Shown here: piece by piece, positions 51,850 to 53,632 of the stretch | Layout of the letters: every line of letters starts with the position of its first letter | Numbering within the stretch: the first letter of the stretch is position 1 | Position numbers and translations under genes: made by a program | The notes under the pieces: generated by a model | Database searches by the model: none | Seen by the model: the letters and a program-made list of their open reading frames with translations, nothing else | What the model was told of the DNA's origin: nothing | DNA from: Selaginella moellendorffii | Taxonomy: Eukaryota; Plantae; Lycopodiophyta | Direction of reading: 5' to 3' | Length of the DNA: 64,000 bases | NCBI RefSeq assembly: GCF_000143415.4 | Contig: NW_003314319.1 | Coordinates: 524,365-588,364, forward strand

Positions 51850-52381
51850 GGTATTTCACTCTCTGAGCCTTGCATTGCGTGAAAGTCACAGTTTTTTTTC
51901 TGCTTGTGATTATCTGGAAAAAGATTTTGTAGTTGTAGAGAGATTGCTTTGTATCATTCTTTTGTGATATAAGATCTGGTCTGTATGAGCAAATTTTCTT
52001 TTTCCTTCGTTCTTGTTTCCCTCCTAACCTGCTTGCAGGCAAGAGTAACAAACCATATCTCATTAAAAGAACTGCTGGGATTACTTGGTATCTGTTTTCT
52101 AGTCCAAGGCCATTCTTCACAAAGTGCTCAACATCTCTGATATCTACAACTATCAGCTTCTTCAGTACGCAGTGGCAAGTAAAACTGCCGCCATTGATCT
52201 TCTCCGCTGGTATTTTTGAGAGCTTCCCAGAAGCAGAGATATCTGTTAACCACGTCCCAGAATTGGCTACAATCAAAAATGCCATCTCCGTCTTCATCTG
52301 AGAAGTTCTCCAAGGCGCTGCCGAGCTGGTCCCTCAATAATTTGAGCAGTTCTGGGTAGTATGAGGCTGGCGCCGCGGCGC

Positions 52382-53632
52382 TCAGCCCCGCCGAGCTTTT
52401 ACCGGCTGCAGCATCGCGACTTTTGTCTCCGTCGGCCTCCTGAGCTTATCAGTTTTATATGCATTGGCCCCGGCTTCATCCTGGGTATTCAAACTATCGG
52501 CCGCCACCTCTTCTTCATCATCGGCAAGAGCGATCACCTGAGTCGGCCCGCATTCAAAACGCTTGGCGAGCTGGAACGTATGATAGACAACGGCACTCCC
52601 ACCTGGAAGCTCCTCTTTGTGACTACCACTGCACGCATACGCTACTGGTGCAGAGATGGCTTTGTCCCACGTTGACCCGGTGCTCTTTAATGGCGAAGTG
52701 ACCGAATCCGTGGAAACAGGAGGCGCAGCATGAACACAGACACTGAAGAACCCCGGCTTGAAGCATCGGACAACGCGGTCGATGAGCGCATTCAGGCCGG
52801 TTTTTGCTGGATCGTAGCCCATGCACTCGAAGCTGGCATAGCTGAAGCCGTCCTCGGGAGTGATGTGAATTGTGGAGTGAGCTCCATTCTCGAGTCCGTT
52901 CATCGAGTAGCCGCAAGGATCAAAGGCGAAGTCGCAGATTTGAGAGCGGGGCAGGATGGAGTTGATACCGGATGCTCTGGTCATGTCCTCACCGGTGACA
53001 ATGGACGCCGACTTGAAGAAGCTCCTCGCGACGGATTTGTCCAGCTCCGTCATGCAGACCTCGAGCGTGTAGATCGTGTTGCTCGACTTGGACACGGCTT
53101 CACCAGCTCGATCAGACTTGCTCTCCGAAGCAACGTAGACATGCCACTTCTGGCGATCGTCGCCCATAACGACGTGCTTGCTGCTGTGGAGGCTTCCAAA
53201 GTGCTCGTCCAGTGTGCGGACCTCCTCGTCAAAGTTGTGATGTGGGAAAGGCTGGACTTCGGGGAAGAGAAAGCTGCCCCGCGTATACTTGCAACGTACA
53301 ACTCGAGCCAGGCCGATGCTAGCAGCCACTGCCAGAAGTTTTGGAAGAGCCTTGAGCAGCCGGGTGGTGCCGCAGGTCTTGATGACGATCCGGTGGGGAT
53401 AGATGAAGAGGCTCGACTCGGAGAGCACGTATGAATCGAAGTGGCCATTGGAGAGCTGAGAGACGATGGTGCATTCCGCCACATTGAGGAACGAGTCTAT
53501 CTGATCCCTCGAAAGCGACCGGAGGGACCGAGCGGCTGCTGGGAAGAATTCAACTTCCAGCCGCTTCTCAAAGCCTTCGAATCCAGGAGTTGGCATCGCA
53601 GGTTCTTCAAAAGTATCCTTCATTCCTACCAT
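52382..53632 (-). CDS. SAMDC: S-adenosylmethionine decarboxylase proenzyme
   Basis: GFEGFEKRLE, YVLSESS cleavage site, KTCGTT, FDPCGYSMN, STIHITPEDGFSYASFE. Intronless ORF with an extended C-terminus. Confidence 0.97.
   Translation of the reverse strand: MVGMKDTFEEPAMPTPGFEGFEKRLEVEFFPAAARSLRSLSRDQIDSFLNVAECTIVSQLSNGHFDSYVLSESSLFIYPHRIVIKTCGTTRLLKALPKLLAVAASIGLARVVRCKYTRGSFLFPEVQPFPHHNFDEEVRTLDEHFGSLHSSKHVVMGDDRQKWHVYVASESKSDRAGEAVSKSSNTIYTLEVCMTELDKSVARSFFKSASIVTGEDMTRASGINSILPRSQICDFAFDPCGYSMNGLENGAHSTIHITPEDGFSYASFECMGYDPAKTGLNALIDRVVRCFKPGFFSVCVHAAPPVSTDSVTSPLKSTGSTWDKAISAPVAYACSGSHKEELPGGSAVVYHTFQLAKRFECGPTQVIALADDEEEVAADSLNTQDEAGANAYKTDKLRRPTETKVAMLQPVKARRG

Follow-up and report, generated by a model that had tools for sequence, protein, structure and literature searches.

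A probable chance reading frame, with no detectable ornithine decarboxylase relic, in the 3'UTR of a Selaginella SAMDC gene

Results

Anatomy of the SAMDC locus

The DNA at and beyond the stop codon of the SAMDC (AdoMetDC proenzyme) gene in the 64-kb window (the whole stretch of Selaginella moellendorffii DNA that was analyzed) is best read as the 3'UTR of a SAMDC-only paralogue that contains a chance open frame and no detectable relic of ornithine decarboxylase (ODC), a reading to which we assign a probability of about 0.9. The segment from 52065 to 52445 would comprise the final part of the SAMDC coding sequence together with the first ~320 bases of its 3'UTR, within a 532-bp interval that SAMDC shares with the 3' end of a transportin gene converging on it. 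The 105-codon –1 frame in this segment would be free of stops by chance, in DNA of moderately high GC content, and would encode nothing, and its resemblance to the NH2-terminus of ODC, which the initial annotation had interpreted as the trace of a former SAMDC-ODC fusion, would be a product of frame-hopping by eye that could be obtained on any sequence. Any ancestral ODC half would have been lost too early for a detectable trace. The features of the locus are listed in Table 1.

Table 1 Features of the SAMDC locus and its 3' flank (positions are those of the window)
Feature	Position	Strand	Remarks
Last coding exon of TNPO3/IPO13-type transportin gene	51313–51849	+	From the ORF list
Interval between the two convergent stop codons	51850–52381	.	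532 bp; transcribed 3'UTR DNA
Met-less –1 frame	52128–52445	–	105 codons and stop; overlaps SAMDC stop (52384–52382)
SAMDC (AdoMetDC proenzyme) main ORF	52382–53632	–	416 aa and stop; intronless
SAMDC COOH-terminal tail past the catalytic domain	52385–52564	–	Residues 357–416; 60 aa
Proposed cryptic intron	52440–52537	–	GT at 52537/36 or 52507/06, AG at 52441/40; no sign of use
Conserved SAMDC small uORF	53693–53902	–	Exons 53902–53777 and 53713–53693
Intron within small uORF of SAMDC leader	53714–53776	–	63 nt; joint 53713->53777 (CT..AC on + strand), runs X1 and X2

The host gene, as judged from its sequence, is a eukaryotic (class 2) AdoMetDC of the plant type. Its product matched the Pfam family SAM_decarbox with an E value of 1.3e-111 (residues 17–354, profile positions 3–343), the self-cleavage motif YVLSESSLF of the proenzyme was read in the translation, and S. 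moellendorffii XP_002973835.2, a member of the same 90%-identity cluster, is identical or nearly identical to it. The protein had been described as running ~40 aa beyond the usual COOH-terminus. This description holds for a comparison with angiosperms only: for the 120 best SAMDC relatives, the median tail length was 41.5 aa compared with the 60 aa found here, tails of at least 60 aa were present in 28 of the 120, and 26 of the 120 had a total length of at least 416 aa. The ODC/linker HMM did not match the tail itself at E ≤ 10.

The spliced 5' leader of the gene contains the conserved SAMDC small uORF, the intron of which is backed by RNA joints. The spliced peptide ends in ...FRSAAYSN/CVRRPS followed by the stop, and it resembles both the uORF of the L005 transcript described below and the Pfam family AdoMetDC_leader. 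Given that the 63-nt leader intron has been spliced out in contigs of runs X1 and X2, these two runs represent RNA. A second joint, 53740->53792, by which 51 nt are skipped (53741–53791), was present in three RNA runs. On the plus strand, which is antisense to SAMDC, its borders read GT..AG, and it extends across the COOH-terminal codons of the small uORF. The joint could stem from an antisense transcript that is spliced or from alternative splicing of the leader at non-canonical sites. We also observed a 16-codon uORF (MLCPDAALLFRGVANN followed by a stop) at 53904–53954 of the minus strand, the end of which lies 1 nt 5' of the small-uORF ATG at 53902.

The transportin gene converges on SAMDC from the other side, and the same convergent layout was found in the other haplotype (L001), in which a 1001-aa gene call with Xpo1 and TPR_TNPO3_IPO13 domains ends 533 bp from the SAMDC stop. 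A contig from run X6 (record 15, 1936 nt) is collinear with 51778–53713, without gap or joint. This contig extends over the SAMDC ORF and all 532 bp between the stops into the transportin exon, of which it includes 71 nt. The 3'UTRs of SAMDC and transportin may overlap as natural antisense transcripts.

The fact that a single RNA contig covers both gene ends, with merely 532 bp between the stops, would also suit the idea that the stretch functions as RNA, in the form of overlapping convergent 3'UTRs or a structured element, rather than as coding sequence. Nothing specific was found in favor of such a function, however. Rfam yielded only sub-threshold matches (group-II D1D4-2 with 24.1 bits against a gathering threshold of 36, and MIR533 with 19.6 against 80), and the haplotype comparison described below adds no information in this regard. 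We therefore consider an RNA element to be most improbable.

Coding potential of the –1 frame

As an item of DNA, the frame is as the initial annotation described it. A Met-less, stop-free frame of 105 codons is present from 52445 to 52128, in the –1 frame relative to SAMDC and overlapping its stop; the translation agrees with that given, and the frame-0 pieces AFLIVANSG and VLKKL...DVEHFVKNGLGLENR were also found in the translation. When the six frames of the 64-kb window were examined, 154 stretches without a stop and at least 105 codons long were counted, and a frame of this length is not out of the ordinary here. The GC3 value of the –1 frame was 0.52, compared with 0.65 for the SAMDC coding sequence. 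Over the kilobase, the haplotypes share 98.7% identity, and only two differences fall within the –1 frame (one synonymous, one Ala to Val). For the frame, a word search that covered 5.8 billion proteins of 0.55 to 1.75 times its length retrieved no relatives. The Atlas recognition value of the frame, 2083, was within the range of shuffled sequences, whereas 91 of 100 proteins of known families reach 2300. We infer that the –1 frame is not translated.

The –1 frame had further been proposed to be joined to SAMDC by a cryptic intron or by frameshifting. The dinucleotides invoked do exist, GT at 52537/36 and at 52507/06 and AG at 52441/40, and either join is in frame. According to this proposal, a minor isoform would splice 52537 or 52507 to 52440, or ribosomes would slip by –1, with the result that a frame of 100 residues, including an EF-hand-like DEDGDGIFDCSQ loop, would replace the SAMDC tail. 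The implied introns of 68 or 98 nt are near the 63-nt leader intron in size, and the sole, and thus best, match of the –1 frame in PDB was an EF-hand protein (phmmer, E 0.06), with the nearest Atlas clusters also being EF-hand families (0.78–0.80). No joint at 52440 was detected in any of the three RNA runs examined, however, all joints found in these runs being confined to the 5' leader, and the X6 contig passes through the site without being spliced; coverage of the site by RNA consists of this one assembled contig, and contigs can lose rare isoforms. A slippery heptamer of the form X XXY YYZ was absent from the zero frame between 52460 and 52380. With an unspliced covering contig and no slippery heptamer, neither of the proposed routes of joining the –1 frame to SAMDC was borne out. 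Nor was a SAMDC-ODC fusion in the sense of one ORF or one spliced mRNA observed, given the stop at 52384–52382, the collinear RNA contig and the ~530 bp left before the next gene.

The protein-level arguments for such an isoform likewise met with counterevidence. No EF-hand was recognized by Pfam even at E ≤ 10, the word search returned no homologues, an Atlas value of ~0.8 is reached by one-third of shuffled proteins, and the recognition value is below 2300. Position 12 of the DEDGDGIFDCSQ loop is Gln, not the calcium-binding Glu or Asp. A minor recoded isoform is therefore unlikely, and we give the version with an EF-hand-like alternative tail only a very slim chance. As a motif in its own right, the EF-hand of the –1 frame was rejected on the basis of this Gln residue, the lack of a Pfam EF-hand and Atlas values at the level of shuffled sequences.

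Search for ODC similarity

Both long frames, the –1 frame and frame 0, were searched as separate pieces. Neither matched any Pfam family at E ≤ 10, including Orn_Arg_deC_N (PF02784), and neither matched an ODC in PDB, in which many ODC chains are present. The only PDB match for frame 0 was uS13 (E ~0.6), in a portion that is antisense to the transportin exon. The ODC motifs YAVKCN (with the PLP lysine), HxGSG, GGGF, EPGR and GPTCD were absent from all three minus-strand frames.

An ODC HMM was prepared from the tails of 16 SAMDC-ODC fusions of the green lineage, 14 stand-alone ODCs and the tail of Psilotum nudum SAMDC. In an unfiltered hmmsearch with this model of the 2380 six-frame pieces of the window, both long frames were missing from the 1141 pieces listed at E ≤ 1000, and the best piece in the region ranked 65th of the 2380. 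Frameshift-aware local profile alignment with four parameter sets yielded z values of –0.5 to +1.2, within the null distribution; equal or better scores were obtained for 11–68% of random window segments and for 21–60% of dinucleotide shuffles, and the opposite strand outscored the SAMDC strand with three of the four parameter sets. When the alignment was confined to the exact ODC columns and DNA that had been paired by eye, the arrangement most favorable to the original claim, z was 0.3–0.7. The colinearity with the ODC NH2-terminus that had been perceived is thus at the level of chance.

Searches with individual sequences led to the same outcome. With tblastn, the tails from Psilotum, Marchantia and the Selaginella paralogue matched 51700–52700 no better than noise, scoring equally on the two strands, and a frameshift alignment with the Psilotum fragment as single sequence scored 26, the null being 28 ± 4.8. 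The 3' flank of the Selaginella SAMDC paralogue (L002) did not contain an ODC signal either. In the positive control, the tail of Marchantia SAMDC scored z values of 6–14 and retained 46 bits after the introduction of two artificial frameshifts. When neutral decay of a real ODC NH2-terminus was simulated, detection was 100% at 0.3, 82% at 0.4 and 40% at 0.5 substitutions per site. Since the ODC scores lay within the null and the method had demonstrated power, the frameshift-aware check against the ODC profile therefore revealed no ODC similarity above shuffled controls, an outcome that the initial annotation had named in advance as counting against its claim.

SAMDC-ODC fusions in the green lineage

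A SAMDC transcript of Psilotum nudum with a Pfam ODC match surfaced in a word search for SAMDC, and its ODC fragment was used as a query against 1.84 billion representatives. Among the top 150 matches to this fragment, 24 proteins also carried SAMDC, and SAM_decarbox was present together with both ODC domains in nine of the ten of these that were scanned. The fusion proteins include those of Chlorokybus atmophyticus (P0148), Mesotaenium endlicherianum (P0137), Closterium sp. NIES-68 (GJP49097.1, P0201), Dolichomastix tenuilepis (P0157) and Picocystis salinarum (P0314), and the Chlorokybus gene model additionally includes the AdoMetDC_leader uORF peptide. All five motifs (YAVKCN, HVGSG, GGGF, EPGR and GPTCD) were intact in 15 of 16 fusions, the exception being P0169. 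The survey of SAMDC architecture in relatives that had been suggested thus uncovered fusions with intact ODC motifs in both streptophyte and chlorophyte algae. A word search of 5.8 billion sequences with the same Psilotum fragment returned the query alone, because the fragment is too short to reach E ≤ 0.001 against a set of this size. No paper on a SAMDC-ODC fusion in the green lineage was found in our search of the literature available outside subscription.

In a tree of SAMDC domains, the land-plant SAMDCs formed one clade (support of 99/97) nested within a grade of algal fusions, and the window gene was grouped weakly (82/63) with ODC-less genes of Diphasiastrum. On the evidence of these sequences, a SAMDC-ODC fusion appears to be the ancestor of the land-plant SAMDC genes. 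The idea of an ancestral gene encoding both enzymes is thus supported for the gene family by the algal fusions, the tree and the tails described below, but not for the window locus, which yielded no ODC signal.

ODC-like tails were found in only two of the lineages represented among 116 SAMDC tails surveyed, Psilotum and Marchantia. In Psilotum nudum (P0121 and P0027; EukProt EP00249 P020017-19), SAMDC is followed in frame by a linker and by ODC residues ~23–111; the tail aligns with residues 23–111 of Trypanosoma brucei ODC (E 1.3e-11), with YAVKCN being kept. Two isoforms diverge and then stop soon after the ODC portion, and the tail may be either a relic that has been truncated or part of a full fusion of which the assembly is incomplete. 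In Marchantia polymorpha, MARPO_0102s0030 (P0122; L003:3001-4656) is a single-ORF SAMDC of 551 aa with a decayed ODC tail of ~200 aa. Marchantia was left out of the training set for the ODC HMM, and its tail was nevertheless matched by this model with E values of 7e-9 to 8e-8 (Pfam, E 0.023), with GLKVVGAAIQMQLGSGAFDTGCFAEIVESAAIFF pairing with the HVGSG region of ODC.

P0169 (L005:160-2910, RNA run SRR32617123), a protein of 813 aa that falls in the land-plant clade, consists of a full SAMDC and a full-length ODC domain. The motifs of this ODC domain have been lost: YAVKCN is replaced by YDLHWN, GGGF by GEVL and EPGR by NARS, HVGSG is lost and GPTCD is deleted. The domain is thus predicted to be catalytically dead, and yet its reading frame appears to have been preserved. 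The leader of the P0169 transcript contains the conserved SAMDC small uORF at 160–324. P0130, a protein of 938 aa with a CAS/CSE1 COOH-terminal domain and five separate Orn_Arg_deC_N stretches, ranked first among the matches to the ODC fragment of Psilotum, with an E value of 9e-31; it probably reflects the merging of tandem ODC fragments into one gene model.

Because SAMDC-ODC fusions exist in the lineage, the prior probability of a relic at the window locus is not negligible. The 3' region might be the remnant of an ancestral SAMDC-ODC gene's ODC half, decayed by more than ~0.5 substitutions per site. Such an origin would fit the nesting of land-plant SAMDCs in a grade of fusions and the persistence of relics on the SAMDCs of Marchantia and Psilotum, and the placement is about right, the resemblance being located ~70–80 residues past the SAMDC core, where the ODC NH2-terminus would start and as is the case in Psilotum. 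The region scored like random segments, however, and lower than the opposite strand in most settings; only ~530 bp are available before the next gene, compared with ~1.3 kb required for ODC; and the tails of Marchantia and Psilotum lie in reading frames, whereas the window stretch is out-of-frame 3'UTR DNA. The grouping of the window gene with SAMDC-only genes of Diphasiastrum further suggests that the loss of ODC is old, and would place it before the split between Selaginella and the clubmosses, far beyond the time for which neutral DNA survives. We thus regard a very old ODC relic as highly unlikely. The broader statement that the 3' flank is either the extremely decayed ODC trace of a duplicated SAMDC-ODC gene or part of a rare spliced isoform with the –1 frame as an alternative regulatory tail is similarly hard to credit.

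Discussion

For the window locus our result is negative. The –1 frame would be ordinary 3'UTR DNA for which annotation is unneeded. The evolutionary idea put forward in the initial annotation is sound for the gene family and not for the window sequence, all of its support coming from relatives. Among these relatives, AdoMetDC and ODC are encountered as one uORF-fronted gene across green algae.

Plant SAMDC genes, such as Arabidopsis SAMDC1, have leaders with a tiny and a small uORF. Like these genes, the window gene has an intronless main ORF with a full-length SAM_decarbox match and YVLSESSLF, a small uORF ending in ...AAYSNCVRRPS, a leader intron, and, in front of the small uORF, another short uORF with a single nucleotide between its end and the small-uORF ATG. 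Angiosperm leaders have a tiny uORF of two or three codons at the position at which the window leader has one of 16 codons, and the SAMDC tail of the window gene (60 aa) is longer than those of angiosperms but within the range of seedless plants.

The green-lineage fusions share with the window gene a homologous SAMDC half, and both the L005 transcript and the gene model of Chlorokybus have a uORF leader of the window gene's type. The fusions are 810–1110 aa in length and contain a linker and a complete ODC, whereas the window gene ends after a tail of linker length, with nothing ODC-like beyond it in any frame. Marchantia SAMDC, like the window gene, is a land-plant SAMDC without ODC function; its relic is in frame inside the coding region, whereas the window gene has no in-frame extension and no signal. 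The bifunctional AdoMetDC/ODC of Plasmodium falciparum has AdoMetDC at the NH2-terminus and ODC at the COOH-terminus. This domain order is the same as that proposed in the initial annotation, but the Plasmodium protein belongs to a separate lineage and has a long hinge and parasite-specific inserts.
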